A stretch of 64,000 nucleotides of DNA from Malacoraja senta. Lineage: Eukaryota. The translations under genes were made by a program, and so were the position numbers. Below, piece by piece: positions 1 to 64,000 of this stretch (within the stretch, counting starts at the first letter, position 1; every line of letters begins with the position of its first letter). Below the pieces are notes generated by a model. It was not told the DNA's origin and searched no databases. It was given only the letters and a program-made list of their open reading frames with translations. The stretch lies in the NCBI GenBank assembly GCA_038087875.1, contig CM075981.1, forward strand, positions 1,612,001-1,676,000, read 5' to 3'.

Positions 1-2288
1 TTGCTAACTAATGAATGGTTTTGCAGAACTGCAAAGGGTATTGTGACTAAAAAGGGAAGAAGCCCGATACCAAGTAGTACTGCAGAAAAAAACACATCTG
101 CTCTAAACAATAAGAACCAGTGCAGAAATGTGCTGATTGTGTGATTAGCTGGACACATGACTACTCATGTATAAATATACTGCCTGTGCACAGAACAATT
201 GAGTGGGACCGTGAGGGGCAACGATTATGTAAACATACTCATGGATGCTCTCCAACTCCCACGTGCGTAATAAAGAGGAATTGTTACATTCTTAAAGTGA
301 CTAATGTGGTTTGTTGTTTGATAGCGCGGATTGAAATTTAACATTGGCGTAGTCGGCAGGATTTCGCTGGGACCATCCCTGACGACTGCGTAAGCAGCTG
401 TTATCTGGCCGGGTCCTCGAGGGGGTAAAAAGTGTACTATCGGATCCATTGAGTCTGAACTCCCGAACGAGTTTTCGGGAAACCGTGGTCCCTCGTCTGA
501 GGTTGATCTGGTTCCCTGCCGAGATCCACAAGAGTCAGAGGTAAGAGAAACATCGTTATAATGGTCAAAAGGTGGGTTAATTGAACATTCAGACTAAGAA
601 GAGTGGGGTCTGTGTAAATTAAGATAATAATTGAACATTCCCATCGTAATTCCTTGCAAAGGTCAGCCTAAGCACACCACAACCCATTGTCTCTGGGCCA
701 AAATATTATGGGTTCAAGTCCGTAAAGGGGCAATAGATCAAGCAAGAACATGGGTTCAAGATGATAGTGGTCTAAAGCAGATAAGCCCAAGATGTAAAAT
801 AATCCTCAAGCGTGGGTAAGGGGCCTCACTGAAACTTGGTCAAGACTGGATTTTACCTGCCTCAGTGACCAGTTGCAAATAAACTGATCTTAAGTGAGCC
901 CATCCCTAGATACGGCCTAGCCAAGAGGAAATGGGGAGGGATGTGAGTAATTTAGCGTGGAACGGCAGAAATATTCATAGATTTTCTAATTTATTAGAAT
1001 GCAAGAAGTAAGTCAAGAGTGTTTTATTATCATAGAGTATGTACTTGCAGCAGCACAATAGAGCAATATACATGAATTCCTTTATCTTTTGTACTAACTG
1101 AGAATGCAAGGTGGAGGAAGGGGAGGAAGGCAATGTAGATGTGGTTGTGTAAAAGGCAATGAATGCTTTGTATCTGAGGGCATCTGCCCAAGGACATGTG
1201 TAACTAAATTTGGCCAATGTGTAATAAAAATAATTTGTTCTGAAAATAAGCCCCCGGAGTCCACGTGAAATGTTCCCATCTACAACGCCCCTCCCCAGTA
1301 CATGAGTACACGACCTACGGGGTAAGTTGGGACAAATGGCCTGTTTCTGCGTTGTATGACTCAATGACTTCAATACAATCTAGCCTGGGAACAATTGTTT
1401 CTTTGATATTAAGGGATCTATGGAAATAGAACTAGTACTGGAAACTGACATGATAAAGGATAAGCTACGATTTTAATGCATGGTGTAGTTATGAAGGACC
1501 GAATGGGGCCTGATATATTTGTTCAATAAATTGTTCACCCAACAATACACATTTATTTGTTTTGAACACATTTCCAGTCAATGTACAAACACATCAAAGG
1601 CCAACGTGCGATGGAAAGAAATATATAGTTCTGAGCCAAATGTGTGAGCTGCATCTTGCTGTGGTCAACGTGCTTCCTGTTAATATGAGCCGTTGAGCAA
1701 AACACAAAAAAAAACACTTCAGTGGTTCAAGCAGCATATGTGAAAGGAAATGGGCAGGTGACATTTCAAGTCAGGACCCTACTTCAGACTGGTGTTACTT
1801 TTTCAGAATATGACTGCAGCAGCAGAAACCCACAAACAAACAATGTTCATAGGTTCATAAGTTCTAAGTGCAGATTTAGGCCTTTCGGCCCATCAAGTCT
1901 ACTCCGCCATTCAATCATGGCTGATCTATCTTCCCCTCTCAACTCCATTCACCTGCCTTCTCCCCATAACCCCTGACTCCCACACTAATCAGGTATCTGT
2001 CAATCTCTGCCTAAATATCCATCGAATTGGCTTCCACAGTTGTCTGTTGAAATAAATTCCACAAATTCACCAACCTCTGACTAAAGAAATTTGGCCCATA
2101 TCTCTCTAAACCTATCCTGTCCAGCTTCCCTCAGGTTCCTATTAAATCTTTCCCCAACCTTAAACCTATGCCCACTGCTTCTCAAATGATGTCCTCTGGT
2201 TCTCAAGTATTCAGCAATAACATGTAGAGTATAAGAATGTTATCTCAGGGAGAGCACATTGCCCTGGCAGGTCAGTGGGTGGAACACA

Positions 2289-2776
2289 GTGGCACAGCGG
2301 TAGAGTCGCTGCCTTACAGCGCCTGAGACCCAGGTTCGATGCTGGCCTCGGGTGCTGTCTGTATGGAGTTTGTACGTTCTCCTTGTGTACACATGTTTCT
2401 CGGGGTGCTCCGGTTTCCTCCCACACTCCAAAGACATATAGGTTTGTAGGTTGTTAAAGAAGGAACTGCAGATGCTGGAAAATCGAAGGTACACAAAAAT
2501 GCTGGAGATACTCAGCGGGTGCAGCAGCATCTATGGAGCGAAGGAAATAGGCAACGTTTCGGGCCGAAACCCTTCTTCAGACTGAAGAAGGGTTTCGGCC
2601 CGAAACGTTGCCTATTTCCTTCGCTCCATAGATGCTGCTGCAGCCGCTGAGTTTCTCCAGCATTTTTGTGTACCTTAGGTTTGTAGGTTAAATTGCACAG
2701 TAAATTGTATATGGGGTGAACACTGGTTGGCGCGGTCTCAGTGGGCCGAAGAGCCTGTTTCCACGCTGTATCTATA
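2289..2776 (+). mobile_element. tRNA-derived V-SINE (HE1-like), split by the palindrome (also ~41216-41703)
   Basis: tRNA-like head gtggcacagcggtagag...ggttcgat, then the V-domain ggagtttgtacgttctcc...ccggtttcctcccacactccaaagac. Confidence 0.75.
2453..2675. mobile_element. PLE-derived palindromic insertion (95-bp arms, 2486-2676) inside a V-SINE
   Basis: Inverted arms around a 1-nt centre (2581), two mismatches; 14-bp direct repeat taggtttgtaggtt at 2439-2452 and 2676-2689. Confidence 0.85.
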
Positions 2777-3844
2777 ACGTTTTTTTGCCAATTGCACACT
2801 CCAGAAGTAGATGGATAACAGTTTTGTCCAGAGCACAGCTGCCTTGTGCAGATCTGTGGTTGTGCAACACAACGCAACGCAAAAAGGATCTGACTTTGGA
2901 GCCCTTCCCACCACCACCCAACGTAGGATGTTCACAGTCGGCTTGCAAAACCATCGAGGAGGATGTACCATAGACTTAATTCTGCAGTTTGCTTGCCGGT
3001 TTGCAAGCATGCAGCTCCCATGTTGCTACCCAGGGTTCAATCCTTGTTCTTGCCTGCAAGGTAAGTTGAAATATATGTCAGACAATCACACATTGGCACA
3101 GCAGGTAGAGCCGCTGCCGCACAGCATCCGAGTCCCAAGTTCGATACTGACCTCGAGTGCTGTCTGTAAATCATTTGTAACCAATGATGTAGAATTTCAT
3201 GATCACGGCAGGATTAAAAACGTATTAATTTGTATGAATCTCTGGAGGAACTCCAGGAATCGCAAAACATTAAAGTGAATCTGCTTGGCCGTCACTCCAT
3301 ATTTTCCTTACTTTTGTCAAAATTATTTTGAAATGTATCTCCCAGTAGGTGTGGAGACGCTCAGGAGGGAAGTCCAGAAGAGAGTGTGAATGGTTTACAT
3401 CAGCGTGGCCAAGCAAAACCTGGGCCACAGTTTCGCTGAACACTTGTGCTTGGTCTGTCATGACCCAGAATCGCGCTTGATAGACACCCCATCCTCAACC
3501 TCCCCCGCTGATGCAGAGCAGCAGCAGTTTAGCACGATGCACTGCAGCAACTCACCAAGACTCCCTCGACAGCGCCTTGCAATTGCAAAAGGCTCCGTGT
3601 TCAAGGCATTATTCTTCACCATTCCCACCAACACTGGCTGGGAAGTGCTTTGGAACGACCTGTGCAGGTGGTGAGGGACGGTGTACAGTATCTGTCTCTC
3701 ATCGCAATCTAGGTGGAATTCAACACAGTTACGAAAATGATTGGGCGGTCTCCCCTGTACACAGTGATGTATATTATAATGTATCTGTTTGTGAAAGGCT
3801 AATTTTCCTCTTCAAATTATGAAATATTTAACCTTCAGTTTCAT

Positions 3845-4138
3845 GTGCACTGTGGGCAGGGAGCGCAGAAAGAGTGGTTGTAGGTAAAGCGATCACAATC
3901 GTATGTCACTATGCAGCAGCGTACCGCTCACACACAAATACTGGTGCCGTGGGACAAGTCGCCAACGTACACGTGTGGTGGAAACAAATGGGAAACATGG
4001 ACAGAGCGGAAGAGTGTCAATCACAGATAACCCGGCACGAGGAACATTTACTGTGACTGTGGAGGATCTTAACTCTGGAGATACAGGATGGTACAGATGT
4101 GGAATTATTACATCTGGCGATCCAACATTTAAAGTACA
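3845..4138 (+). pseudogene. Orphan V4-type Ig pseudo-exon (copy A)
   Basis: V4-like sequence. Acceptor tttcag mutated to tttcat; 1-nt deletion (cacacaaatactgg) frameshift; C' Cys to Arg; 3' end and donor lost after FKVH; no leader upstream. Confidence 0.9.
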
Positions 4139-5099
4139 CAACAAAAACCGTGCAGGTTTTCATATCCTGAAGTTAAACCAAATCTCGATGTATATGATAT
4201 CACGAGGTATTGTCAGGTTGTACGTGTGCAGAATGGATTTCTGTGCCCGGTGTGGATTCATAGGGGTCCATCTTCCAGACAGCAATGTGTTGGGGGTGGT
4301 CGGGTCAAATAAAGCGTGGTTCCCACTGTCAATGAGTCTGATGACTTCACATTGTCTTTTGCAGAGACGCGATGAGTCAGAAGCTGGCCACTCGACCCAC
4401 GAATTACAATGAAGACACCTAGCTTGCACCAACAGTGAGGGAATTCTGCACCGCGATGAAATATTTATGCATCATCCTGCTTTGTCAACTGATATCAATT
4501 CGACGGAATATACGTCTATTGCAATTCAACTAATGAATTCATGAAAGTGACTTCAAAGCAATGTTCCAAAGTTTCCAAACCATATCTGTTTCCAAAACGC
4601 ATTTCCCGCAATGATCTGATTGTTTGTCACCTCTTCCAAGGTTTCTTTCGTCACCTTCGAACTGTTGTTTTAACCTTTGCATGTTTTCCGTTGCTCCAAC
4701 GTCTTATACTCTGTTAAACTATATTATATGCATTCAACTTCCTGGAAAAAAATGTTTTCGCTGATTACTGAATAATAATGCATCATAATGCTTCTTAATA
4801 AATTGTTATTGTCGATAAATTGTTTGTCTGATTTGTTTTGTATATACTGCAACTTTAGTGATGAAGAACAGACTGCAATCAGACTGCTGGATATTCCTCC
4901 GGTTGCCAAACGTTAAAGGCGTTTAGGAAAGGCAATCAGTTAATCTTTCAGACCATGCTATTCTATCAAATCAAAGTTATGCAACGACATTGTTTTGACT
5001 ATTAGCCTAATTTTTTTTATCTCCACAGATGTTGACTGACGCGCTAAGCACATCTAACATCTGCAGATTTAATTTCCGATATGCAACTAATTTTTAGGT

Positions 5100-5700
5100 T
5101 GGAAGGAACTCCAGATGCTGTTTTAAACTGAAGATAGACATAAATTGCTGGGGTAACTCAGCGTGATAGGCAGTCGCTTGTTGCCGCTCAGTCCGCCTAA
5201 ATCTACCTGATATCCCGGTCGCTAAACACTTTAACACCCCCCTCCCATTCACACACTGACATTTCAATCCTGGGCATCCTCCATTGTCATAGTGAGTCCC
5301 AGCGTAAATTCGAGGAACAGCACCTCATATTTCGCTTGGGCATCTTACACCCCAGCCGTATGAACAATTACTTCACTAACTTCAAGTAACCCTTGCTTTC
5401 CCTCTCAATCCACCCGCCCTCCCCTCCCCTCCCCCACCTTCCCAGTACTCCGATCAGTTTGACAGTCCCCGGTTATATTTTATCTCTAATTGCGTTGTTG
5501 TCACCTTCTCCCAGCTAACAATAATCTATTCTACATTTTCCTTGATCCACATCACCTTTGGTTTCACGCCTTACAGTTCCTTATCCAAGTATCTCCCTCT
5601 CCCCTGACTTCAGTCTGAAGAAGGGTCTCGACCCGAAACGTCACCCATTCCTTTCATTCATAGATGCTGCCTGTCCCGCTGAGTTACTCCAGCATGTTGT
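5100..5700 (+). mobile_element. Penelope-like element 3' fragment with inverted 5' tail (also ~43985-44705)
   Basis: Decayed GIY-YIG C-terminal homology (PVAKHFN..PSH, HLIFRLG) plus a ctgaaga...gaaacgtc hammerhead-type motif at 5615-5642. Confidence 0.75.
5615..5642 (+). ncRNA. Minimal type I hammerhead ribozyme-like motif of a Penelope-like element
   Basis: CTGAAGA-A-GGGT(CTCG)ACCC-GAAACGTC: CUGANGA core, stem II, GAA followed by palindromic ACGU and H. Similar copies at 2582(+), 2552-2580(-), 24013-24040(-), 35019-35046(-), 44617-44644(+), 58515-58542(+). Stem I looks weak. Confidence 0.6.
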
Positions 5701-5923
5701 ACAACAATATTTTTTGATTAAGTGATTGAATGATACAGCATGGATACAGACCATTTGGCCCACCGATTCCACGTAAACCAGCAATCAACCCTTCCACACT
5801 AATTCTATATCACCCCACTTTCGCGTCTTTTGAGTACAGTAATATTGATATACATTTTAATGCTGCAACGAGTTATTCATTTTGTCTACCGTACAAATGA
5901 GTTAAAGGACAAAAATAAAGGCC

Positions 5924-6120
5924 ACGATGGCGCAACGGTAGAGTTGCTGCCGCACAGCGCTTGCATCGCCGGAGACCCGGGTTCGACGTGTATGGAGTTT
6001 GTACGTTCTCCCCGTGATCGCATGGGTTTTCTTCGATATCTTCCGCCTCCTCCCACACTCCAAAGACGTACAGGTATGTATGTTAATTGGCTTGCTATTA
6101 ATGAAAATTGTCCCCAGTGT
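5924..6120 (+). mobile_element. V-SINE (also ~44922-45125)
   Basis: Same head and V-domain. Confidence 0.7.
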
Positions 6121-6973
6121 GTATGCGGTCAGTGTGGACTCGCTGCTGACACTTTGCTCGCGTTGCTACAACAAGGGTGTGTAGATTCGTATCTCTGAAC
6201 CGCATCTTGCGAGCAACTCGTTGTAACATTGTTTGCTGAAGAGTGTTTGCAGAAGTCATGGGTCAATGGCGAATGAAGACAGAATTAAATTGTTTTGGTG
6301 CATCGTCGGTTCCTCTTTGCAGTATGTTTAGTTGGGCAAGTAAACATGAAATAGCTCCTAACAAAAGATCCTTTACAGAGGGCCGTCAACGCTCATCTAA
6401 CATCAGTGGCGGACACATCAATGTGTTACACCGATGCCACGTGATACACAACATTGACACTGATGTACACAACCCGAATAAACTGCACTCTTCCCCTGAA
6501 AGTAACACACCTAGAACGATAGCCCGCTGCAGATATTAGGCTATATTATAATGCAACTATTTGCCTACAGATTGAAATGAATCGATGCAAGCAGATGTAA
6601 AAAGTCAGCAACTGACATATACATGAACAGAACACTGATAATATATGAGCTCTGTATTGCAATGAAGACAAGTTAACAATTCTATTCAACGTGCATATTT
6701 TACCTTGCTTTAACTTCACTAAGTGTATCACTTCGCCCTTGTTTGAATTACATTACACATGTCAGTTACATTCCACATCCCGCTTTCCCACTTGATCTCC
6801 ATCCTGTGGTAATTCTAGACAAACGTATTCACAGTCCACTACACCATTAATTCTCATTTTCAAAACGTGAATACCATGACAATATTGTTTCAAAGTTTGA
6901 ATTAAAGAGTTGAAGCAGAGAGGAGAAGGTCAAATTCCAATTAACCTCAGCTGATTTCAGGTGAAAATCCCCT

Positions 6974-7654
6974 ACTTCCTCACGCCAGCTTCCTGTTTTG
7001 CCCCTTGTCCCCAGTAATATGCCACAACAAAAGTTCCAATTATTATATTTTTAATCTGCCGGTCCACTTACAAAATCAACGAGAAGAAATGATCCGAAGT
7101 TTACACATCTTAGACGTTTCTACTCTTCTAAATGTCATATTTTATCCAATGTATCATTGTTTACAAGAAGGGTCCCGACCCGAAACATCACCTATCGATT
7201 TTCTCCAGAGATGCTGCCTGGCCCGCAGAGTTCCTCCTGCATTTTTTTTGTCTAGCATTATTTCCACCACTGTTCAGTGTTAACAGACTCTGAGTACAGA
7301 GATAATCACAGCTCCATCCTTACGGATACATCACACTTGACGAAGTGGTTGAAGCAGCAGCAATAACAACATCTAACGAGCATTGGACAGGTCCATGTAA
7401 GGGGAAGGTTTGGGGAGTTTCGGGTTTAAATGTGGGAAAATCTAACTAACTTAGATATGCACATTGGTCTAACGCGTTGGGGAGAAGGGCCTGTTTCCGT
7501 GACGTATGACTCTGTGATCATCTGACCCAACCATTTGTTAAATATAACCCTGATCCTTTCACACTGTAACGTGTGGAGCTGCTGCTGGCTCGCTGTGGTT
7601 CAGGATCTGAAGTCCTGTTCCCTTCTTCGTCATTGCTATTTGAGAGATGCGGTT
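6974..7654 (+). promoter_or_regulatory. Candidate haematopoietic promoter/enhancer motifs upstream of the gene A ATG
   Basis: ACTTCCTC (PU.1/ETS GAGGAAGT, minus strand) at 6974-6981, CTTCCTGT (ETS) at 6989-6996, RUNX-type TGTGGTT at 7594-7600 and TGCGGTT at 7648-7654. Short motifs only. Confidence 0.3.
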
Positions 7655-7720
7655 GTATCTGAGAGCTACGAGCTGAGCGACAGACAGACAAGTGCTGGCC
7701 TCGTCACTGTGGATAAAACA

Positions 7721-7757
7721 ATGTGGATTCCCATTCTTCTCATCTCCTCGCTGCCGG
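7721..7757 (+). CDS. Gene A exon 1, signal peptide [12 protein letters not shown](G)
   Basis: aaaacaATG start, hydrophobic leader resembling CD300-family MWLP..LPG leaders, phase-1 donor G|gtgagt. Confidence 0.85.
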
Positions 7758-10700
7758 GTGAGTGAAAGCCAGATCCGGATATTCCAATGATCAATGTTAT
7801 TTGGGGTCTCATGCACCCTTTCCACAGCAGAGATAGTTAAGTATGTGTAGACATGTAATGGGGGAGATGCAACTCAGTGCATTGTGGTGATGGATCTGAA
7901 ATCACATTTGAATATCTAGACTATGTTCGTAGTTTAACCACTGTTGACACGGTCTAATTGCATCCTGGTGATAGTTTATAGGCATAAAATAGCAAATGAA
8001 TTTGGAGCAGATACTCCAAGATACCTGGACCGAAGGACAGAGGTTACAACATCACCAGGAAGTTAATTCTACACCTTTTAAATGTGTTTACAACTGGGGG
8101 GGGGGGGTGGTCGGGATTGTGGACTCATTGTATCAGTTCAAATATTCCCTGCATTTGTCCAACTCAACTCTGTCGCAAACCCAACAATTCCCCGCAGTCT
8201 GAGACTGAACCACTGTTCTCGCTCTATCCACCCACCCCCAACTCTCTCTCCATCCTCTTTCCAATCCGCAACCCAGTCGCGCTAAAATGCAAGTTCAGGT
8301 TATTGTCACGTGTACCGAGGTACAGTGAAAAGCTTTTTGTTGCGTGCTAATCAGACAGATACATGATTATAATCGATCCTCTTACAGTGCATAGATACAT
8401 GAAAGGGAAATAAAGTGTAAGGTAAAGCCAGCGAAGTCCGATCAAGGGTATTCCGAGGGTCACCAAAGAGGTAGATAGTTCAGCACTGCTCTCTGGTTGT
8501 GGTAGGATGATACTGATGTGTGAGTGCAACTGGAAAGGAACTGTCCCCGAATCTGGCGGTGTGCGTTTTCACGCTAGTAACGCTCTCCGGTAATATACCC
8601 GCATTATTGTAACTCGTCCGTCCTCAGTGTCCTCAGTCAGGGCTTTATAAAGGCAGTGGCGGCGGTGAATGTCTAAACACGGGTCCGGCCCAGTGTCGGT
8701 TGAGAGATAAATGTTTCCGGGACATCTGGGCACCGCCTGGGGTTGAATACATCCTTGACAAGTATTGTAACATAGTTGTATAGTTGTTTATTTCGTTTAT
8801 TTGTTTGTCTTGTATTATGGTGGTGGGTTCTGTTTTGTTTTATTGTATCGTCAATATTATTTTCAATAATTAAATAAATTATTTGATAATATTTTTTTTT
8901 TAAACACGTGTCCGGCCCAGTGTCGGTTGAGAGATGAATGTTGGCTGCGCAGCCGGCGGCACCGCCAATTAAATAGCAAAGTGGGGTCTTTCTTTAGGGT
9001 GAGAGGCCGGGCACCGCCTGGGATTGTTGGAAGGCAGCTCCTGCAACACTGCCGCGCTCCCTCAGAACCGCACTGCGATCCCAGCCCAGTTTCTGCTCAG
9101 GGATCTGGAGTGGGAAGTGAACCCAAATTGTACTGAGCCGCGGACAGAACATTGACACAACTGGTACAATAACAGCACTGTCTGCACTTCAGACCGGAGA
9201 CATTGGTCGTGAAGCAATATGACACATTATGGAACGTTTTACGTTTTCTTTCATGTAATCTTCAAAATGTATCAATTACCATTAAACAGTTAATTTGCTC
9301 TCCATCTGAAAGTTTCTCCGCTCAGTTTCAGGTGCAGTGTGGGCAGAGTGGGAAGTAAAAGGAGTTGTGGGAAGAGAGATCACAATCGATTGTCACTATG
9401 CAGCAGAGTACCGCTCACACACAAAATACTGGTGCCGTGGGAGGAGTCGATCGTGTAGAGTTTTAGTGGAAACAAATGGGCAACACGGACGGAGTGGAAG
9501 AGTGTCAATCACAGATAACCCGGCACGAGGAATATTTATTGTGACTGTGGAGGATCTTCACTCGGAAGATACAGGATGGTACAGCTGTGGAATTTCAACA
9601 TCAGCCGACCATCCAATATTTAACGTTTTACTCGAAGTATCTGACGGTATGTTTCGCAGCGAATGACTTGACGTCTCCAGCAGAAAGACAATACAGGATT
9701 ACAATCGATCCTCTTACAGTGCATAGATACATGAAAAGGAAATTACGTTTAGTGTAAGGCGAATCCAGCAAAGTCCGATCAAGGGTAGTCCGAGGGTCAT
9801 CAAAGAGATAGATAGTTCCGCACTACTCTCTGGATGTGGTAGGATGATTCAGATGCCTGACAACAGCTGTGAAGAAATTGTCCCCGAATCTGGCGGTGTG
9901 CGTGTTCACGCTAGTAACGCTCTCCGGTAAGGGACCTGGAGGTGGGTGGTGAGTGGGCGAGTGGTGAGTGGGTGAGTGGTTGGGTGAGTGGGCAGATGCA
10001 TGGCAGATGAAGTTTAATGTGGATAAATGTGAGTTTATCCACTTTAGTAGCAAAATCAGGAAGGCAGATTATTATCTGAATGTTGTCAGGTTGGGAAAAG
10101 GGGAAGTACAAAGAGATCTGGGGGTCCTTGTTCATCACTCACTGAAAGTAAGCATGCAGGTACAGCAGGCAGTGAAGAAAGCTAGTGGCATGTTGACCTT
10201 AATAACAAGAGGAGTTGAGTACAGGAGCAAAGAAGTCCTTCTGCAGTTGTACATGGCCCCAGTGAGACCACACCTGGATTATTGTTTGCAGTTTTGATCT
10301 CCAAATTTGAGGAAGGACCTTCTTGCTATCGAGGGAGTGCAGTGTATGTTGAGGGAGTGCAACAAGGTTAATTCCCGGGATGGCGGGACTGTCATCTGTT
10401 GATTGAATGGTGCGGGTGCGCTTGTATACTCAGGAATTTAGAAGGATGAGATGGGATCTTATTGAAAAATATAAGATTATTAAGGGATTGGACACGCGAG
10501 AGGCAGGAAACTTTTTCCCGATATTAAGAATAATGGATAGGCCATTTAGAACGGAGATGAGGAAAAACGTTTTCACCCAGAGAGTTGTGAATCTGTGGAA
10601 TCATCTGCCTCAGAAGGCAGTGGGGGCCGATTCACTGGATGCATTCAAAAGAGAGTTAGATAGAGCGCTTTGGGCTAGCGGAATCAAGGGGTATGGGGAA

Positions 10701-37676: not shown

Positions 37677-37780
37677 CCCCCCTCCCCCCCTCACCCCCTC
37701 AACCCCCCCCCCCCCCGACCTCACCCCCCCTCACCCCCCCCCCCACCTCACCCCCCCCTCTCACCCCCCCCTCTCTCCCC
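37677..37780. repeat. C-rich low-complexity tract, (cctcacccccc)n-like
   Basis: Direct reading. Absent from the paralogous sites at ~2150 and ~41080. Confidence 0.85.
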
Positions 37781-37892
37781 TTAAACCTATGTCCTCTGGT
37801 CCTCAAGTGTTCAGCAAGAACATGTAGAGTGTAAGAATGTTCGCTCAGGGAGAGCACCTTGTCCTGGCAGGTTAGTGGGTTTCAGGTAGAAC

Positions 37893-46000: not shown

Positions 46001-46724
46001 TTGCCCCTTGTCCCCAGTAATATGCCACAACAAAAGTTCCAATTATTATATTTTTAATCTGCCGGTCCACTTACAAAATCAACGAGAGGAAATGATCCGA
46101 AGTTTACACATCTTAGACGTTTCTACTCTTCTAAATGTCATATTTTATCCAAATGTATCATTGTTTACAAGAAGGGTCCCGACCCGAAACATCACCTATC
46201 GATTTTCTCCAGAGATGCTGCCTGGCCCGCAGAGTTCCTCCTGCATTTTTTTTGTCTAGCATTATTTCCACCACTGTTCAGTGTTAACAGACTCTGAGTA
46301 CAGAGATAATCACAGCTCCATCCTTACGGATACATCACACTTGACGAAGTGGTTGAAGCAGCAGCAATAACAACATCTAACGAGCATTGGACAGGTCCAT
46401 GTAAGGGGAAGGTTTGGGGAGTTTCGGGTTTAAATGTGGGAAAATCTAACTAACTTAGATATGCACATTGGTCTAACGCGTTGGGGAGAAGGGCCTGTTT
46501 CCGTGACGTATGACTCTGTGATCATCTGACCCAACCATTTGTTAAATATAACCCTGATCCTTTCACACTGTAACGTGTGGAGCTGCTGCTGGCTCGCTGT
46601 GGTTCAGGATCTGAAGTCCTGTTCCCTTCTTCGTCATTGCTATTTGAGAGATGCGGTTGTATCTGAGAGCTACGAGCTGAGCGACAGACAGACAAGTGCT
46701 GGCCTCGTCACTGTGGATAAAACA

Positions 46725-46761
46725 ATGTGGATTCCCATTCTTCTCATCTCCTCGCTGCCGG
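46725..46761 (+). CDS. Gene B signal peptide exon
   Basis: Same sequence as 7721-7757. Confidence 0.85.
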
Positions 46762-52700: not shown

Positions 52701-55700
52701 CAGCATCTTTCCCACCACCAAAGTCAGGCTCACTGGTCTATAATTCCCCGTTTTTTCTATCGCTCCTTTTTTGAAAAGTGGAATTTAACTTCTCATTCAC
52801 TTCACTTTTCACTTAAAGTGGAATGCTCAGCACATTTCCCTTCCTCTGAACTGTATGAAATGTCACCCTGTCAGAAGTTTGCATTTCGACTCAAACTAAT
52901 AATCCGACAGATCAGTGAGAAACAAGTGTTGCTCGCGGTCTGAATACCCCGAGAGTTTAAAAAAACAGTCCCCAGAGCTCAATAGACTGCGATCAGTCCT
53001 CCCGTGGTAGGCCATCCCGCTTCCCGCCCCCACCTCAGGGATCAGTCATTCCCTGCCAAACCCCGCGCTCTCTCTCTCTCCCTCTGCCCGATCAATGCGC
53101 CCCCATCTCCAGCAGCCAACGTCCACCCACCGCCCGGCAGTCAGCCAATCTCTCCACCCGGACATTTCTCCGGTGTTAAGCAGAATAAACTCATCTTTCA
53201 CCCCATCAGCCGTCGCACACAACACATAATCCTCCAACATTTTCGCCACCTCCAACGGGATCCCACTACTAGACACATCTTTCCATCTCCACCGCTTTCT
53301 GCTTTCCGAAGAGACCGTTCCTTCCGTAACTCCCTGGTCAACGTCCATCCCCCCCCCAAAAAAAAACCCCATCCTCTCCCCAAGTACCTTCCCCGACAAC
53401 TGCAGGAGATAGATCACCTGTCTCGATACCTCCTTCCTCTACTCCGTCCAAGGTCTCCAACAATCTTTGCGGGTGAGGATTGACTAGCATCTCCTCGAAG
53501 CTCACCTACTACATCCGCTGTTCCAGGTGTGAACTACTGTATATCGGCGAGACCAAGCGCAGACTCGTCGATCGTTTCGCTGATTAACTCCGCTCAGTCT
53601 GCTTCGGCCGACTTACAACCCATCGGTTTGAATATTGACTTCTCTAACTTCAAGGAACCCTTGCTTTACTCCTGTCCCCATCCCGCCACCATCCTAGCTC
53701 TCCAGTTAGTTGCACAGTCAAACTGATTTTATTTTACTTATTGTATGCCTCGTTGTCACCTTCCCTTCAGCTCACAATGATCCATTGTCCATTTTCTTTT
53801 CACCTTTGATCACTTGTTTTCACACCTTACCTTTCCATTTATCTTCTGTCTCCCTGTCCCATGATTCTCAGGCTGAAGATGGGTCTCGACACGAAACGTC
53901 ACCCATTCCTTCTTTCGAGAGATGCTGCCTGCTCCGTTGCGTTACTCCAAAATTTTGTGTCTATCTTAAAGGGATCGTAAATTCGTTTTCCACAGCAGAG
54001 ATGGTTAAGTGTGTGTAGACATGTAATGGGGGAAATGGAACTCGGTGCATTGTGGTGCTGGATCTGAAATCACACTTGAATATCTACACAATGTTCGTAG
54101 TTTAACCACTGTTGACACATGGTCGAATTGCATCCTGGTGATAAATGAAAGGCTTAAAATAGCGAATGAATTTGAAGCAGATACTGCAAGACACCTGGAC
54201 CGAAGGTTCCAACGTCATCAGTAAGTTAATTCTACACTTTTAAAATGTGTTTACCAAGGAGGTGGAAGTCAGGATTGTGGACTCGTTGTGTCAGTTCAAA
54301 CATTCCCTACATTTGTCCGGCTCAACTCTGTCGCAAACCCAACAATTCCCCGGTGTCTGAGACTGAACCACTGTCCTCGCTCTATCCACCCACCCCAACT
54401 CTTTCTCCATCATCTCTCCAATCCGCGGCCCAGTCGTGCTGAATTGTCCAGGGCGAGCCGGGGTCATCGGGAATAAAACCTGTCCCAGATGAGCAGCGGG
54501 ACATTGGGCTCACAATTCAGTTTAGTTTATTGTCACGAGTACCGAGGTACAGTGAATCTGGCGGTGTGTGTTTTCACGCTAGTAGCGCTCTCCAGCAAGG
54601 GACCCGCTTTATTTTAACCGGTCCGTACTCTGTCCTCAGTCAGGGCGTTGTAAAGACAGTGGCTGCGGTGAATTTCTAAACACGGGTCCGGCCCAGTGTC
54701 GGTTGAGAGATGAATGCTGGCAGCGCCGACACTGAAATAGCAAAGTGGGGTATTTCTGTGGGTTGAGAGGCCGGGCACCGCCTGGGATTGTTGAAAGGCA
54801 GCTCCTGCAACACTGCCGCGCTCCCTCAGTACCGCACTGCGATCCCAGCCCAGTTTCTGCGCAGGGATCTGGAGTGGGAAGTGAACCCTAATGGTACTGA
54901 CCCGGGGACAGAACACTGACACAACTGGTACAATAACAGCACTGCCTGCACTTCAGACCGGAGACATTGGCCGTGAAGCAAAATGACACATCATGGAACG
55001 ATTATGTTTTTCATGTAATCTTCAAAATGTATATATTTCCATTAAACAGTTCATTTGCTCTCCATCTGAAAGTTTTTCCCCTCCCTTTCAGCTGCAGTGT
55101 GGGGAGAGAGGAATTTAACAGGAGTTGTGGGAAGAGCCATCACAATCGATTGTCACTATGCAGCAGAGTTCCGCTCACAGGCTAAATACTGGTGCCGTGG
55201 GCAGAGTCGCCAATGTACAGATATGGTGGAAACAAATGGGCAACACGGACGGAGTGGAAGAGTGTCAATCACCGATATACCGGCACTAAGAATATTTACT
55301 ATGACTGTGGAAGATCTTCACTCTGGAGATACAGGATGGTACAGCTGTGGAATCACAGCACCTGCCGACCATTCAATGTTTAACGTATATCTCCAAGTAT
55401 CTGACGGTACGTTTCGCAGCGATTGACTTAATGTCTCCACTGAAAAGCCTGATCCATGTTTTCTCCGGGAAGGGTCAGGGCAGCACCGATATCTCGAGGC
55501 TCCGCAGCAGTGCAGAGGCCTGCGGGGAGCGGGCGAGGGTCGGGAAACCCCACTCATGTTTGCTCTCACCCAGTGCGGGCTCTGTCCCATTGAGCGGCCA
55601 CCCACTTCAAGACACTCAACACATTACCCTGCCTCTGAATTGTATGAAATATCACCCTGTCAGAGGTTTGCATTCCGACAAACTAATAACCCGACAGATC

Positions 55701-58700
55701 AGTGAGAAACAAGTGTTGCTCGCCGTCTGAATACCCGGAGAATCATAAACAGGGAATCAGTCCCCAGAGCTCCACAGACTGCGTTCAGTCCCCAGGTACC
55801 TTCCCCTACAACTGCAGGAGATGCAACACCAGTCACTATATATCCCCCCCTTTACTCCATCCATGGGCCTCAACAGTCTTTTCGGGTGAGGCAGACGTTC
55901 ACTTGCATCTCCTCTAACCTCATCTACTCTATCCGCTGTTCCAGGTGTGAACAAGCGGATATAGTAGATGGGAGACCAAGCGCAGACTCGGCGATCGTTT
56001 CGCTGAACAACTCCGCTCAGTCTGCCTCGGCCTACGCTACATCCCGATTGCTAAACACTTTTATTCCCCCTCCCATTCCCAAACTGAACTTTCCGTCCTG
56101 GACCTCCTCCAGTGTCAGAGTGAGGCCAAAGGCAAATTGGAAAATCAGCGCCTCATATTTCGCTTGGGCAGCTTACAACCCAGCGGTTTGAATATTGACA
56201 TCTCTAACTTCAAGTAACCCTTGCTTTACTCCTTTCCATCCCGCCCCCATCCGAAACCTCCAATTAGATTCACCTGATAATATTTTACTGATTGTATGCC
56301 TCGTTGTCACCTTCCCTTCAGCTGACAATGATTCATTCTACATTTCCCTTTAACATTGTCACCTTTGATCACTTGTTTTAACATCTTACCCTTCCATTTC
56401 TCTTCTGTCACCCAGAACATGACTGTCAGGCTGGAGAAGGGTCTCGATCCGAAACTTCACCCACTCCTTCTCTCGAGAGATGCTGCCTGCTCCGCTGAGT
56501 TCCCCCAGTATTTTGTGTCTCTCTTAAAGCGATCGTAATTAGTTTTCGCGATTAAATTACAAGGCATTGAATTGTGTTTTTGGCACGCTGGTCTTCATCA
56601 GTGAGAACATTCAGAATATAATTTGAGATAATATGCTTCAGACGTGCAGATGTTCAGTCCACACTTTGGGAATTGTGTTCAGCTTCAGTCACTCAGCTCC
56701 AAGAAAAGTTGAGATGGACAGCGTGCAGAAAGGTTTAAGGGCGACGTTGCCTGGACAGGATGGGATTGACGCAGGGAGCGATTGGACAAACTCAGACTTC
56801 ATTCCTTAGTGTGGAAATGATTGAGAGAGGAACTTATAGAAATGTATCAATCACGAGAAGCATGTTCATTTTCCCACGATGTGTGGAATCAAAAAGTGGA
56901 GGACAGAGGTAATGGGAACTATTTAAAGAGGGAGGAATAGTAAGGTGCAATTGACCATAATGTCATGTTTTGTACAGATGAGTGGCCGAAGCTGAACACA
57001 ATTCGCACAAGTTCGACCTCAACAACATATGTACAACTGAAACATAACATCCCAACATATGTTCTGAGGAACAACATTTTCCACACATTGGGTAATATGT
57101 ACATGGAACCTGCTGCCAGGGGAAGTTGTTGAGGCAGTTAGAATAGCAGCATTTAAAATAAATTTTGGATATTTGCGTAGATTGGGATCATTGCGAGTGA
57201 TAAATGAGAAACGCGGACATATGGAAATGTCATAGAAAGACATGTTGGTCGGCATTAATGAGCTGTTGTGATGGGCATCTTTCGGTTCTCTATAACTCTA
57301 ACCTTCTTCGGTTTCTGCGCTTCGCACACTCCCAGAGATGTAGATGAGCCGGTGAGGTATCAACCGGACGGTTCGGGCTGAGATAAAGTGCTGCTGAGAT
57401 TTAGCAAGTGTTTGGTTTTTAACAATTCATACAGGTGACTGAATATTTGCTCCATTCCCACAGAACCCATTTCTGCTCCTGTGCTCAGTTATCTGTCAGC
57501 AGCAAATGCCTCACGTCTTGGAGGCTCAGTGTCAGTGTCCTGTGAGTCTCTCCGTGGATCCCTTCCCATCCATTACACGTGGTTTGAGAAGAAGGAGCAT
57601 CGGGTGTCAACGATCTTGAAAGGCAATCAACTGGATCTGAGTTGTGACATCCTCAGAGGTGAACACCTTCGATATTACTGCACAGCCGCAAATAATCGTG
57701 GGACAAAACCCAGTGAAATAGTCAAGGTGAAAGTCTTCAAAGGAGCAGGAACGTGCAGTTATGTGACAGAAATGAACAATGCAGGTGAGTGTTCCTCTCG
57801 TGTCCCTGAACCTGCTGCTATTCACCTTGTGGTGATGTTCATGGATTTCTTGTTATTTGCAGACGGCATCATTGCAGCCACCGTGAGCTCATGCTGTAAA
57901 ATGCGAGAGTTTGTTTGGGGGACTGGCAAATAATTGCCCGTAGCTTCCACCATGGAGGTGTTGCGCAATTTCAGCAAAGGAGAGAAAGACATGCACTTGT
58001 CACAAAGGGTTGAGTGCACTCCATCAAATTTCTGCCTTCTGCCTTAAAAAATGCCGCTTGGCTGCCGCTTAAGGTCTCACAGTCACTTTGAGACATTGAA
58101 AGCAACCAAATGCATCCTGTTTGGATCCGCCATCATTTACAATCAAGGATGTGAGACCAAGCGGAGGCTTGGCGATCGTTTCGCCGAACACCTCCGGTCG
58201 GTCCGCAATAACCAACCTGAACTCCCGGTGGCTCAGCACTTCAACTCCCCCTCCCATTCCGTATCTGACCTCTCTGCCCTGGGTCTCCTCCATGGCCACA
58301 GCGAGCAACGCCGTAAATTGGAGGAAATGCACCTCATATTCCGCTTGGGCAGTCTACATCCTGGTGGCCTGAACGTTGAATTCTCCCAATTCTGCTAGCC
58401 CTGGCTGTCCCCTCCCCTTCATCAGCCATCTGGTTGTCTCCTCCCCTCCCCCAGCCCTCGGGCTCCTCCTCCGCCTTTTCCTTTTTTCCTTTCTTCTCCC
58501 CACCCCCTATCAGTCTGAAGAAGGGTTTCGGCCCGAAACGTTACCTATTTCCTTCGCTCCATAGATGCTGCTGCACCCGCTGAGTTTCTCCAGCATTTTT
58601 GTGTACCTATGTACAATTTCATGATCATGTTCATGATTTTAACTGTTAATTTGTGTTAAACTCCAGTAATATCACTAAATTAAATTGTAATCTACTTGGC

Positions 58701-61700
58701 CGTCACTCCATCAAGTATAACCCTTACTTTTGTCAAAGAGAATTTTGAAATGAACTCCCAGTAGTCGTGGAGACGTTCAGATTGGAAGTCCAGAATAGAG
58801 TGTGAATGGTTTACATCAGAGAGACCAAGCTTATACAATGCCAGCGTTTCTTAAACTATTTCAGTGCCATTCACCCTTGAGTCTTTATTACAAGATTTAA
58901 TTCACCCTCCACTAAATATTCTTATGTTTTTTGGGTTATTATCATCTTATTTTCACGTGTGCATAATTTTATATATAATTTATTTTGTCACATGAGCAAA
59001 AAACATGAATTAACTCATGCACCCCAAAATAATTTCATTCGCCCTTGGGTAAACCATTCATCAGTTTAAGAAGCACTGGCCGAGGCTACAATTTCGCCGA
59101 ACACTTGTGTTTGGTCTGTCATGACCCAGAGTCGTACTTGATAGACACCCCGTTGATGCAGAGCAGCAGCAGTTTGCACCATCTGCACGATGCACTGCAG
59201 CAACTCACCAAGACTCCCAAGACATTACCTTCCAATTGCAACAGGCTCCGTGTTCAATGCATCATTAGTCACCATTCACACCCACATTGGCTGGGAAGCG
59301 CTTTGGAACGATGTGCAGATGGTGAGGGACGGTGTACAGTATCTGTCTCTCATCGCAATCTAGGTGGAATTCAACAGAGTTAAGAAAATCATTGGGCGGA
59401 CTCCCCTGTATATATTGATGTATACTATAATGTATATGTTTGTGAAAGACTAATTTTGCTCTTCAATCTATGAAAGAATTTCCTTCAGTTTCAGGTGCAC
59501 TGTGGGCAGAGAGCGAAGTACGAGGGGTTGTGGGAAGAGCGATCTCAATCGATTGTCACTATGCAGCAGTGTACCGCTCACACACAAAATGCTGGTGCCC
59601 TGGGACAAGTCGCCAATGTACACATATAGTGGAAACAAATGGGAAACATGGACAGAGCGGAAGAGTGTCAATCACAGATAACCCGGCACGAGGAATATTT
59701 ACTGTGACTGTGGAGGATCTTCACTCTGGAGTTACAGGATGGTACAGATGTGGAATTATTACACCTGGCGAACCAACATTTAAAGTACATCTCCAAGTAT
59801 CTGAAGGTAGGTTTCTCAGTGAGTGACTTCATGTCTCGACTTTGGCATCTGCATAAAACATTTGTTGGGTCACATATGGGAGCCTGGTGCACAGTTCTGG
59901 TCGCCGCTTTATAAAACAAAAGATGTGAAAGGTTTGGAGAGGTTACAGAAAAATGTCACCGGGATATTTAGTTGTAGTTTACAAATGCAACATGGAAACG
60001 GATCCTTCGGCCCACCGAGTCCACACCGACTAGCGATCACCGGTCACACTAGTTCTATGTTATTCCACTTTCCCATTCGCTCCCTACACACAATTCTACA
60101 ATACCGCCATTCACACACCTCATTAGTGCAACATTATCACTATCAACAATTGTATACAAGGAAATTTAAAAGTTGTTGATAATGATACTGTTGCACTAAT
60201 GAAGTGTTTGAATGTTGGTATTGTAGAATTGTGGCAGAGTTTCAGATTAAAAGAAGATTAACTGCAGATGCTGGAAATATAAAACAAAGACAGATGGTGC
60301 TGCTGTGTATTGGTGCAGTGGCAGACATGGTAGTTCTGCCAGCTGGGTGGATGGAGAGACACAGAGATGTTCAAATCTGTTAAATTGTGAGGAGAAGGTA
60401 CAGGGAAGACTTACAAGGATGTTGCGAGGGATTGAGCAGATTAGGACTTTATTTCTTGGAGCACAAGAGGATGAGGGATGATCTTATGGCAGGTAAAAAA
60501 TAATGCGAGGAATAGATCGAGTTAATACACAGCCTTTTGCTCAGAGTAGGGGAATCGAGAACCGGAGGACATGGTTTTAATATGAGGGGGGAATGATTTA
60601 ACAGGAACCTGGGGAGTAACGTTTTTACACAATGGTTGGTAGGCACATGAAACGAACTGCCGACAGAAGTAGTTATGGCAGGTACTATCGTAACATTTAA
60701 TAAAATATTGGACATGTACATGAATATGATATGTTTAGTGGGTTAAGGGCCAAGAAAGGGCAGGTGGAACTAGTGTAGATTGGGCGTGTTGGTCAGCGAG
60801 GGCAAGTTAGACCGAAGGGCCGGTTTCTATGCTGTATGACTCTATGATTCTATGTAGATGGATGGGTCAGATTCCAAAATGGCGGCTCTGGCTAAGATAC
60901 ATGGTGGATATTGGCGAGTGTTTGATTTTCAGATGTTCACTCAGTTGTCTGACTGTTTGCTCCTTTCCCACAGACCCCGTGTCTGTTCCTGTGCTTGGCT
61001 TTCTGTCACCAGCCAATGTCTCCTGTCTCGGGGGCTCAGTGACAGTGTCCTGTGAGTCGGTCAGTGGATCCCTTCCCATTAGCTACACATGGTATGAAAA
61101 TACCCCATCTGTGGATTCAAAGATCTCAGACCAAAATGCCCTGGATCTGCATTGTCAATCATTCAAACACCAGCACCATCAATATTATTGCACAGCCTCC
61201 AATAATAATGGAACAAAATCCAGTGAAATGGTCAATGTGTCCATCTCCAGCAGTGACGTGCCCTGCAGTTTTCTAGTGAAAATCAACGGCACTGGTAAGT
61301 AGTGGGGGGAATGAGGAGAAGAAGGGGAAGTGCGGGTGGGGGTTTCATCAGATTACAAGTGATAGAAGCAGAAATAGACCATTCAATCATGGCTGATCTA
61401 TCTTCCCCATTCTCCTGCTTTCTCCTCATAACGTCCGTCACCCTGAAATCCCTGCACGTTATTTAATTAATTTATCAAGATTAATATATGGAATTATGGC
61501 TCATTTGTCAGTACTTGGTTGTTGGGCTCCAGAAATAGAATTCCTAGTGCTGGTGTAGGCTAACATCCTGTATAGAATTGTCTCTTCCATTTACACAGCT
61601 TTAAACTAGGTTTGCAGTGACATCAGTCCATGCACATTCACTTTCCCACCACATGATCCACACACAGATATGGTAAGGGATCAGACATTATCAGTAAATG

Positions 61701-62326
61701 TGGCCACAGTTAAATCCTTGACGACGGTATCCCATTTACCAGCACCTCGTCCATTGCAGCAATTCAGGTACCTCCACCTTCTGGGTTTAAAAATATGTCT
61801 TGATACCCTTGAAACATCCTGCTCCTTAACTTAACCATGTGTTCTCCACATTTACACATATCTGTCGTGCAACATTTCCCAAAAATCCACTGTCTATGCA
61901 GCTCAGAGTTTTTGCACACCTGTAATTGGTTTCCCCTTCCTCACCTGGGGGAGGCGGACAGGAGCACTTGGAGAAAACCCACACGGTCACAGGGAGGTGG
62001 TAAAAATTCCGTACATCCGTAGTCAGGATCGAACCCGGGTCTCTGGCGTTGTAAGGCAGCAACTCTACCGCTGCGCTACTGTGCCGTCGACACCTGGCGC
62101 CAGAGTTGTTACCAGCCCGCCTGCTTGTCGTAACATCTCCCATTTACTCAACTCACACTGAAGAAACATTATCCTGTCTGTTAAGCCTATCAACTACTTA
62201 CATCGGAAAACCATACTCCTTTGTTCAACTGCAAGTGAAAAGCAGTGAAACTGACTTTTATTTCCTTGTTCCAACAGGTCATGAATATTCTTGTGAAAAT
62301 TCGATAACATCCAATTACTCTGCAAG
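46725..62326 (+). CDS. Gene B (paralog of gene A), 3'-incomplete in the window: L-V-V-V-C2-V-C2-stalk
   Basis: join(46725-46761, 48336-48650, 50838-51152, 55092-55406, 57464-57784, 59495-59806, 60974-61294, 62278-62326); splice sites intact, frame open. No TM exon found before 64000. Confidence 0.82.
48336..48650 (+). CDS. Gene B exon V1'
   Basis: Protein identical to V1; same splice sites. Confidence 0.95.
50838..51152 (+). CDS. Gene B exon V2'
   Basis: Protein identical to V2; same splice sites. Confidence 0.95.
55092..55406 (+). CDS. Gene B exon V3'
   Basis: 315 nt, four Cys kept; 15 aa differences from V3. Confidence 0.95.
57464..57784 (+). CDS. Gene B exon C2a'
   Basis: 321 nt, AG/GT intact; 10 aa differences from C2a. 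Confidence 0.92.
58153..58608 (+). mobile_element. Young Penelope-like 3' insertion, copy B only
   Basis: [17 protein letters not shown]...PVAQHFNSPSH...[18 protein letters not shown]. The empty site in A reads caaggatgtacaatttc (~19621-19637); atgt occurs on both sides. Confidence 0.9.
59495..59806 (+). CDS. Gene B exon V4'
   Basis: 312 nt, open; 6 aa differences from V4, including KYWC to KCWC and DTGWY to VTGWY. Confidence 0.9.
60974..61294 (+). CDS. Gene B exon C2b'
   Basis: 321 nt, AG/GT intact; 10 aa differences from C2b. Confidence 0.92.
62278..62326 (+). CDS. Gene B stalk micro-exon (G)HEYSCENSITSNYSA(R)
   Basis: Same acceptor, donor and 49-nt length as the A stalk; Cys and N-Y-S sequon conserved. 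Confidence 0.85.
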
Positions 62327-64000
62327 GTAAACCACTTTATTTCCAATGGAAGTTACAATATAGTAATTGCTGGTGTTTTGGTTGGGAATGCTTTATTTGG
62401 GAGAAATTTGTGCCTGCCTTTCACTGGCATTAAATGCCCTGAGAGTATTGATCTGAATGCACAGTGGCACAGCCGATAGAATCACAGCCTCACAACACCA
62501 CGACCCTGGTTCATTAGGTGCTGTCTGTGCGTGGTCTGCATGTTTTGCCTTTTATTGTGTTGGTTTCATTTAAGTGCTCCAGTTTCCTCCCAGCTCCCAA
62601 AGATGTGCCAGTTGTAAATTGCCCCGTGTGTACAGGACAGCGGTTGAATCTGTGGATAGGGGATGGGGCGGGGAGGGAGGGAGGGTGTTGGACGGTAGTG
62701 CTAGTTGATGAGGAAGTGGGGAAAATAAAAATGGGATTGACAGAGGATCCGTGTGAATGTAGTTGACTGTCGGCACAGACCAGAAGGGCCAAATGGCCTG
62801 TTTCAATACTGTGTTTCTCCATGGGTCTTTTATCCAATGAAACCAAATATCGAAGCATAATCAAATTTTGTACGTCCAGCCATGATCACATTGAATGGCG
62901 GTGCTGGCTCAAAGGGCCGAATGGCCTACCCCTGCACCTCTTGTCTATTGTCTATTGTCTATTGTTTCAAGCCTGACACCAAATATAAATGTATCTCTTA
63001 AATATTCGTTAATAATATGTATATAACTTGCAAACCAATTATTAGTTAACTCTTCAGAAGGGGAATTACACTGGGTTTACATCTCATTGTGTTGTGTACA
63101 TGCTTGGATGATAAGAACAAGTTCTTCCATTTGCTGCTTTTCAGAGAGCGCTTCCTGCAGTATTCACCATGACTTCTCCTTCACTAACCTCATCCCATGC
63201 TGTGAGATGAATATAGTTGCCAAACCCAAGTCTTGCAGTTTAGCTTGGTTGACACTTGCTCTGGTGTGGTGCTGATAGGTAAATGCATTATGAATTATGG
63301 GCTAAGACACCCCCCCTTGATATCACTTATGGCAACACCTTGCCATTGATGGGGTCACGCACCAACAATTCGCTGGCGCAGAATGTGAGAAAAGTCTTGA
63401 ATCAGACCGAATACAGCGAACTGAGTTAACTCAATCAATCAATCAATCAATCAACCGTTATTGTCATTTTAAACATTTCACACATAAATAAAAACAATAA
63501 AAACACTCCAAAATAATAATAATCAATAAATAAATATATAAATAAAACAATCCAGTCCCTGATAAAAACAATACGAATAGCTAAAAAGTGCAGGTAAAAA
63601 AACAGCAACATTAAAATACAAGTAAAAACATTCATAAATAACTGACGCTCCCTTACACATTGAACCTTGAAAACATTGTTTTTTTAAATTATCCCTGAAT
63701 ATTCCATCATAATACAGTCATGAAAGTGGGAACACTTTGTTATTTATCTTGTTACAATTGAAATAGGTCTGGCTTTCTATCACACTCTTGCGATAGGAAA
63801 TAAGAATATTAATAAAACGCACGCCGCTATTAGCGAACCTTTAACCGATTTTTCGAACACACACCATCTACACACCTACCGCGTTAATCCAAGTAATATC
63901 GAGGGGGCGAGATTAAGCATTAACATTTTTAATTTATTTTATTACTTGGCCTCATCCGTTTCCATATTTATTGTCCCACCTCCCTTCCACCATTAGAATT

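Follow-up and report, generated by a model that had tools for sequence, protein, structure and literature searches.

A candidate paired receptor in the skate Malacoraja senta: tandem MDIR genes with a recently shared 5' block on two old 3' lineages

A 64,000-nucleotide stretch of the Malacoraja senta genome (GenBank assembly GCA_038087875.1, contig CM075981.1, positions 1,612,001 to 1,676,000 of the forward strand; the whole stretch is called here the window, and position 1 is its first letter) was found by self-alignment to comprise 1.6 units of one tandem repeat, and each unit carries one gene of the MDIR (modular domain immune-type receptor) family with six immunoglobulin (Ig) domains. The two genes, A and B, are probably tandem family members that combine a recent common 5' block with two old 3' lineages, and their sequences make them a candidate paired receptor. 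The homogenised block measures at least 22.5 kb, continues past the left edge of the window and takes in about 7.7 kb of DNA upstream of the genes. The non-coding divergence between the units varies 150-fold, between 0.12% and 18%, which rules out a single duplication after which the copies simply diverged undisturbed.

Two receptor genes in tandem units

The window contains no runs of N, and its self-alignment yields a single colinear chain from A 1-27769 to B 38636-63311. Its gene content is two genes and two relics. The end of gene A (35912) lies 2724 bases before the start of unit B.

1-38635 (+): unit A, tandem copy with one six-Ig-domain MDIR receptor gene
38636-64000 (+), cut by the window end: unit B, tandem copy with one six-Ig-domain MDIR receptor gene
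7721-35912 (+): gene A, intact inhibitory MDIR with 11 exons and the domain order V-V-V-C2-V-C2
46725-64000 (+), cut: gene B, first eight exons to 62326, transmembrane (TM) segment and tail beyond the window
1-22476 (+): young (homogenised) block of unit A, with upstream DNA, relic, leader and six Ig exons; partner of B 38636-61417
38636-61417 (+): young block of unit B, partner of A 1-22476, with B-only insertions at 39953-40247 and 58153-58608

Exon borders were placed by AG/GT sites, and the Ig exons are all of phase 1-1 in both copies. The splice sites of gene A are AG/GT throughout, and its spliced product has 798 aa with one stop, at the end. The TM segment is uncharged, and three motifs resemble immunoreceptor tyrosine-based inhibition motifs (ITIMs): ITYAVV, VLYADV and TIYASV. 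The partial product of gene B (661 aa) is stop-free and all its splice sites are canonical. The exons and the differences between the copies are as follows.

A 7721-7757, B 46725-46761 (+): leader exon, 0 nt differences
A 9332-9646, B 48336-48650 (+): V1 exon, 0 nt differences
A 11834-12148, B 50838-51152 (+): V2 exon, 0 nt differences
A 16202-16516, B 55092-55406 (+): V3 exon, 25 nt / 15 aa differences
A 18942-19262, B 57464-57784 (+): C2a exon, 14 nt / 10 aa differences
A 20514-20825, B 59495-59806 (+): V4 exon, 8 nt / 6 aa differences
A 22023-22343, B 60974-61294 (+): C2b exon, 22 nt / 10 aa differences
A 23634-23682, B 62278-62326 (+): stalk exon, 49 nt, 8 nt / 6 aa differences
29745-29833 (+): TM exon of gene A
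35172-35218 (+): cytoplasmic exon of gene A
35637-35912 (+): last exon of gene A

The aa counts and the 8 of 49 nt in the stalk reproduce those of a preliminary description of the window that was made from the sequence alone; the 10 aa of C2b consist of nine whole-codon differences and the split first codon (E/D). Altogether 47 of the 661 shared residues differ between A and B, and the copies are 93-98% identical from V3 to C2b. The ratio of replacement to silent differences (pN/pS) between A and B is 0.58 when pooled and near 1 in C2a and V4. Positive selection on the diverged exons was considered and is unsupported, given the pooled value and no exon clearly above 1.

MDIRs are said to have been described from the clearnose skate by Cannon et al. 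2006 (Immunogenetics 58:362). PMC3031540 presents them as a multigene family that has both activating and inhibitory members and counts CD300, TREM and pIgR among its relatives. The domains V1-V4 of the genes analyzed here exhibit V-set matches, with pIgR and CD300/CLM as the best solved relatives (the top solved-structure match is pIgR, E 8e-60 summed over the four domains), and C2a and C2b match Ig_2, Ig_3 and Ig_C17orf99, with FCRL5 and CD22 as the best PDB matches. A library-wide search and a word-index search each revealed the receptor family throughout skates, rays and sharks, where its members mostly carry the automatic names 'polymeric immunoglobulin receptor-like' or 'Fc receptor-like 5'. 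Clearnose-skate MDIR3 and MDIR5 are among the top matches of the family search: gene A aligns with MDIR3 (P0167) at 76% over 696 aa, i.e. over its whole length (MDIR3 residues 8-701), and is 80% identical to an Amblyraja homolog, and the partial gene B aligns with MDIR5 (P0187) at 76% over 452 aa. Thirty family proteins fall into two clean classes, one with an arginine in the TM segment (Arg-TM) and a tail of about 45 residues without a tyrosine motif, the other with an uncharged TM and ITIMs. Sequence relation, a V plus C2 ectodomain and location in a multigene cluster with ITIM and charged-TM members all place genes A and B, as predicted proteins, in the MDIR family.

Divergence strata and the breakpoint

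The likelihood segmentation of non-coding aligned sites alone (21,184 sites, 612 mismatches) divided the A/B alignment into six strata of very different divergence.

A 1-1875: 3.5%
A 1876-6229: 1.5%
A 6230-15006: 0.35%, with the 0.12% core at 7086-13540
A 15007-17379: 5.2%
A 17380-22476: 2.4%
A 22477-27769: 17.9%

The features that define the two ends of this range, together with the gaps in the A/B chain, are listed below.

A 7086-13540, B about 46090-52542 (+): near-identical core, with promoter region, leader, V1, V2 and introns, including old fragments of long interspersed elements (LINEs)
A 22400-22500, B 61350-61440 (+): identity breakpoint, 133 nt past the C2b donor
A 22477-27769, B 61418-63311 (+): old-homology zone, with stalk exon and conserved intron segment; 17.9% raw divergence, Kimura two-parameter distance (K2P) 0.206, about 80% aligned identity
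A 27603-27769, B 63145-63311 (+): conserved intron segment, 82-85% in inhibitory and Arg-TM loci of two skates
A 25128-25545 (+): A-only insertion, gap in the A/B chain
A 25681-27602 (+): A-only LINE insertion with reverse-transcriptase open reading frames (Pfam RVT_1), gap in the A/B chain

The core has 7 mismatches in about 6.4 kb (K2P 0.0012, i.e. 0.12%). The best 6-kb segment of the young block holds 6 mismatches against 114 expected (Poisson P ~1e-40; 0 of 5000 permutations). The preliminary description had noticed a constant offset of 39004 over more than 4 kb; it is exactly 39004 for A 7151-12554 (5.4 kb), with 4 mismatches. As introns and old remains of LINEs make up part of the core, its identity cannot be due to constraint. 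The young block as a whole is a colinear chain with 90.6-99.3% identity per aligned piece, and the copy-specific insertions inside the block measure 112-456 bp.

The strongest change-point of the segmentation (log-likelihood gain 346) falls at A 22476|22477, which corresponds to B 61417|61418. Here the identity drops from about 95% to about 80% within about 100 bp, while A and B stay colinear across the drop; the breakpoint lies just 3' of a short high-copy repeat fragment (about 60 bases) common to both copies. A single duplication, which according to the preliminary description should have left uniform identity, is contradicted by the six strata and the permutations, and the poor alignment of the introns after C2b that this description mentioned corresponds to the old-homology zone (about 80%, K2P 0.21). 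The view of the same description that the genes have ancient 3' halves, starting after V2, has to be narrowed: the part past C2b is old, V3 to C2b belong to intermediate strata, and the border of the old part is the breakpoint 133 nt after C2b. The two insertions that it assigned to copy A alone are real, with slightly different ends (25128-25545 and 25681-27602 instead of 25135-25545 and 25681-27601); the second is of LINE type by its reverse transcriptase and is absent from all three Rhinoraja loci introduced below, and 'CR1' is a putative label.

The V3 module (5.2%) departs from its neighbors, and its excess divergence extends beyond the exon into the flanking intron. With this intronic part and a pooled pN/pS of 0.58, selection on the exons does not account for the pattern. 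Intragenic conversion from donors in the window (V1, V2, V4 and the relic V exon) was also tried and does not explain the excess. At 73 A/B differences, B agrees with V2 at 41 and A at 28, and both copies have private states, those of A clustering at 15842-16081. The module is either the least-reset stratum or has been converted from a copy outside the window.

Different ages of the 5' and 3' parts

The two sides of the breakpoint were dated by comparison with three loci of Rhinoraja longicauda, of which L001 and L002 are of the Arg-TM short-tail type and L003 is inhibitory. Immediately 5' of the breakpoint, identity is about 96% between A and B and 86-88% between each of them and Rhinoraja; immediately 3' of it, the values are about 80% for A against B, 85% for A against all Rhinoraja copies and 69-78% for B against them. 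This contrast indicates that the 5' parts coalesced after the split from Rhinoraja, while the 3' parts had separated before it. The 5' parts of the Rhinoraja pair itself (activating L001 and inhibitory L003) are just 77-91% alike, so the near-identity of A and B is lineage-specific. If the Rhinoraja copies compared are orthologous and their distance (about 13-15%) is used as the yardstick, the young strata would have about 0.01-0.4 of the age of that split and the old zone about 1.4 times that age. A separate observation on the Rhinoraja loci is a stretch of 2.25 kb that is 98% identical between L001 (21659-23909) and L003 (26555-28805) at non-homologous positions; it is probably a young transposon.

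The protein tree of V4+C2b groups the sequences by species whatever their signalling type: A and B of the window are joined with support 99/97, apart from the other skates, the three Rhinoraja proteins, including one Arg-TM form, come together at 100/96, and Rostroraja MDIR3 and MDIR5 at 83/76 (weak). The stalks group by type, not by species. Of 15 residues, the stalk of gene A shares 12 with MDIR3 and that of gene B (HEYSCENSITSNYSA) shares 13 with clearnose-skate MDIR5. The 3' part of gene A is colinear with the inhibitory locus L003 at 83-89% through the TM, cytoplasmic and ITIM exons.

The non-coding strata and the incongruent history of the 5' and 3' parts thus support the idea of the preliminary description that non-allelic exchange homogenised the 5' parts of two older paralogs.

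The 3' end of gene B

In the inhibitory loci (A and L003) and the Arg-TM loci, the stalk and the conserved intron segment are common to both types, after which the two types diverge. In B, the segment is followed by this stretch.

63312-64000 (+), 689 bases: B stretch confined to activating-type loci, corresponding to DNA 0.3-0.6 kb upstream of the Arg-TM exon in Rhinoraja

This stretch matches L001 (24303-24724 and 1625-2046) and L002 (22545-23014 and 3652-3978) at 79-90%, is colinear with all four Arg-TM gene copies of these two loci, and has no counterpart in the inhibitory locus L003, in gene A or in the rest of the window. In L001 and L002, the point that corresponds to the window end precedes the Arg-TM exon by 560-590 bp. 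Because the last 689 bases of B match the Arg-TM loci alone, gene B is predicted, with considerable confidence, to continue into an Arg-TM exon past the window. Within the window no such exon was found by tblastn with activating C-termini or by three-frame reading of 63100-64000 and 27550-28300; the sole product of the search was a degenerate relic tail at 4362-4412 / 43277-43327. The suggestion of the preliminary description that B has a different, possibly activating, end is borne out as far as the window reaches, i.e. by a stalk of MDIR5 type and 3' DNA of Arg-TM-locus type, with the TM exon itself lying outside. The term 'activating' would apply to B by analogy, since known Arg-TM receptors have FcR-gamma or DAP12 as partners; coupling to an adaptor, a common ligand and joint expression of A and B are predictions.

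The conserved intron segment was considered as a second stalk/TM exon and rejected as an intron piece found in both inhibitory and activating loci; it is a coding exon solely in the Rhinoraja model P0169, ahead of the Arg-TM exon. Another frame of the segment gives a sequence that resembles a second stalk (DEYSCQTQ...) and then turns hydrophobic. In the B stalk, one sequencing run of the same species (X1, see below) has A for T at position 62316 at full depth, so that the Tyr of ...SNYSA becomes Asn and individuals differ in the stalk of this activating-type copy.

Proposed history

The pattern requires at least three layers of exchange, not one. The first step would have provided both 3' ends with one and the same 5' block, joined to them 133 nt past C2b. 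An unequal crossover, resulting in a tandem duplication with a hybrid gene, is the most likely form of this step, given a tract of at least 22.5 kb; conversion over a very long tract would leave the same A/B picture. The simplest history would be that an inhibitory gene and an Arg-TM gene crossed over unequally in their C2b-stalk introns, giving the 39-kb tandem duplication. Later interlocus exchanges (conversions) would then have reset parts of the block to 1.5-2.4% divergence, and the identity of promoter, leader, V1 and V2 (0.12% divergence) would go back to a last conversion of about 6.5-9 kb. The result would be a candidate paired receptor in which the same membrane-distal binding domains are wired to opposite signals.

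A more specific version, to which we give somewhat less than even odds, is that gene A is a hybrid seen shortly after its origin: the crossover in the C2b-stalk intron may have linked the whole ectodomain, with the promoter, of an Arg-TM receptor to an inhibitory end, or vice versa, and the two outermost domains may have been kept identical by subsequent conversions.

Alternative explanations and assembly check

Could the duplication itself be an artefact of assembly, with A and B (or the core) being haplotypes or a collapsed repeat laid in tandem, or with B being a chimeric join at the repeat near 61.38 kb? We regard this as very improbable. The window has no gaps, and the repeat fragment, of about 60 bases, is much shorter than long reads. 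The divergence of 1.5-5% with insertions of 112-456 bp in the young block, and of 18% with about 2.3 kb of LINE insertions after it, is far beyond the allelic level, and each copy remains colinear, on either side of the breakpoint, with single genes of Rhinoraja. An independent check was provided by two runs of the same species (X1 and X2), apparently from another individual, as judged by homozygous differences. They contain 67-72% of the sampled words of the 3' part of B, and the stalk region of B is represented by unitigs in both (a 679-nt contig, 62225-62903, in X1; 62109-62250 and 62307-62566 in X2). The word depth of the B-specific unitigs in X1 (64-70) equals the summed allele depth at heterozygous sites (minor allele about 20-26 of 65-84); this full depth indicates that B is present at full dose with two alleles of its own. 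The half depth expected of a false haplotype duplication, named in the preliminary description as grounds for rejection, is thus contradicted over the 3' part of B. The suspicion of an artefact draws on the high-copy repeat fragment at the breakpoint and on the scope of the read check, both of which return among the reservations below.

A single recent tandem duplication without exchange, its uneven identity being due to local mutation rates and selection on exons, could appeal to the V3 exon, with 7.9% against 5.2% in the flanking intron, and to the pN/pS near 1 in C2a and V4. It is hardly credible in view of the strata found in non-coding sites alone with their 150-fold range, of an excess in V3 that includes introns, of a pooled pN/pS without an excess of replacements, and of 3' parts older than the Rhinoraja split. 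More serious, although still unlikely in our judgment, is the possibility that the mosaic is real and the pair does not work: the 3' end of B would be a decaying or signal-less remnant, and the common 5' block would reflect turnover of the array without functional meaning. In each unit there is indeed a dead relic of activating type, reduced to a degenerate tail and a V exon that lacks splice sites, the TM exon of B is beyond the window, and CD300C, the activating partner in primates, is often lost (PMC12447643). Against such decay stand the eight visible exons of B, all open and with canonical splice sites, its stalk exon, which is in frame and has kept MDIR5-type residues, and the very recent re-homogenisation of the promoter-to-V2 part with an intact gene.

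The interpretation of A and B as a candidate pair with a common 5' block and two old 3' lineages remains our preferred one, and several points weigh against it. The TM and tail exons of B, outside the window, may be broken or absent, and the Rhinoraja Arg-TM genes carry an A-like stalk, so that the stalk type is not fully diagnostic. No RNA run of Malacoraja senta was found, and expression and splicing are therefore predictions. Crossover and conversion cannot be separated for the first event from units A and B alone. The breakpoint is unbridged among the listed unitigs, because the high-copy repeat sits there; the read check covered the 3' part of B, with the near-identical (99.9%) core outside its scope, and the alternative letters in the depth argument could come partly from other paralogs.

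Relics, repeats and other fragments

A relic of an activating-type gene is found 3.3 kb upstream of the leader in each repeat unit.

A 3835-4412, B 42749-43327 (+): activating-type gene relic, orphan V4-like exon and degenerate last exon ending ...RRDESEAGHSTHELQ

In the V4-like exon the acceptor CAG is changed to CAT and the donor is missing, and copy A has in addition a 1-nt deletion near 3936. The exon is joined directly to the degenerate last exon, the C2, stalk and TM exons between them having been deleted. A 4141-5171 is 88% like the last-exon region of the Rhinoraja Arg-TM genes. Another fragment, located in the V1-V2 intron within the core (10868-11053 and 49872-50057, both on the minus strand), resembles a stalk/TM exon of another CD300-like gene; it shows 50% over 64 aa to the C-terminal part of Rhinoraja P0006 and contains a stop.

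Just before the start of unit B, 36539-38286 is an older partial copy (85-91% identical) of unit positions 639-2913, and thus the inter-gene region is itself a patchwork of earlier duplications. The B-only insertion of 456 bp at 58153-58608 is a very high-copy repeat (word depth 1e5-1e6 in the runs), and one X1 unitig skips 58149-58608, i.e. has the form of copy A. In the intron between the TM and cytoplasmic exons of gene A, one continuous reading frame of 899 aa (31004-33700, +) combines an endonuclease-like part with a reverse-transcriptase part. It has the appearance of a near-intact LINE, and no other full-length element is closer to the fragments 9978-10835, 12342-13779 and 25715-27586. 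The stalk-TM intron of gene A contains about 0.9 kb of G+C-rich sequence in which G forms long runs (28489-29396); this block is absent at the same place in Rhinoraja L003.

Relation to known systems and implications

Paired activating/inhibitory receptors with a common binding face are regarded as a consequence of arms races in which pathogens take advantage of the inhibitory partner. Merohomogenisation, described for the paired opposing receptors KLRC, KLRI, KLRB, Ly49 and PIR of leukocytes (Fossum et al. 2011, PMC3210942), follows speciation and affects just the part that binds the ligand; the opposite signalling ends stay conserved from species to species. The same pattern has been reported for CD300A/CD300C and Siglec-11/16. 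In the window, the ectodomains are closer within the species than between orthologs and the signalling ends are older trans-species lineages; grouping of ectodomains by species and of stalks by type, as observed for A and B, is the defining test of PMC3210942. The skate locus differs from the described cases in belonging to a cartilaginous fish and another gene family, and in its tract of at least 22.5 kb, with upstream DNA and several dated layers in one locus; moreover, opposite signalling by B is here a prediction from sequence.

Among the individual systems, MDIR3 and MDIR5 of the clearnose skate belong to the same family, with the same CD300/pIgR-type V and FCRL-type C2 domains, and MDIR3 has the same uncharged TM and ITIM tail as gene A, which differs from it by one extra N-terminal V domain (V-V-V-C2-V-C2). 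What the window adds to them is the genomic view of two neighbors whose 3' ends are old and type-specific and whose 22.5-kb 5' block was homogenised recently. The CD300 receptors resemble A and B in their related V domains and, if B has the predicted 3' end, in combining an ITIM gene with a charged-TM partner, the ectodomains being kept similar by repeated conversion and the activating partner being prone to decay; they have one V domain, compared to the six Ig domains with interleaved FCRL-like C2 of the candidate pair A and B. pIgR is the best solved match of the V domains, but it has V-type domains only, with neither FCRL-type C2 nor an ITIM tail. A true pIgR ortholog was rejected on account of the two interleaved FCRL-type C2 domains and the ITIM-like tail of gene A, and 'pIgR-like' is a name of similarity, not of orthology.

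Such pairs are kept in step by a homogenisation confined to the binding part, which is on record for mammals and Xenopus; no description of merohomogenisation for cartilaginous fish was found in the literature searched. Both the family and the process are known; their combination in a cartilaginous fish is what is new, and the locus is a good clean example rather than a surprise. For annotators, it makes clear why gene models in this cluster fuse or break, and how the names 'pIgR-like' and 'FCRL5' hide two signalling classes. If gene A is indeed a hybrid, partial homogenisation would have been active already in the CD300/pIgR-related receptors of the oldest jawed vertebrates, and the array would be a dated multi-layer record for measuring tract lengths and rates. 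In this family related to CD300 and pIgR, the locus offers a clean breakpoint and no fewer than four layers of different age, and the ectodomains of three skate genera cluster by species; together this would push the process back to early jawed vertebrates.

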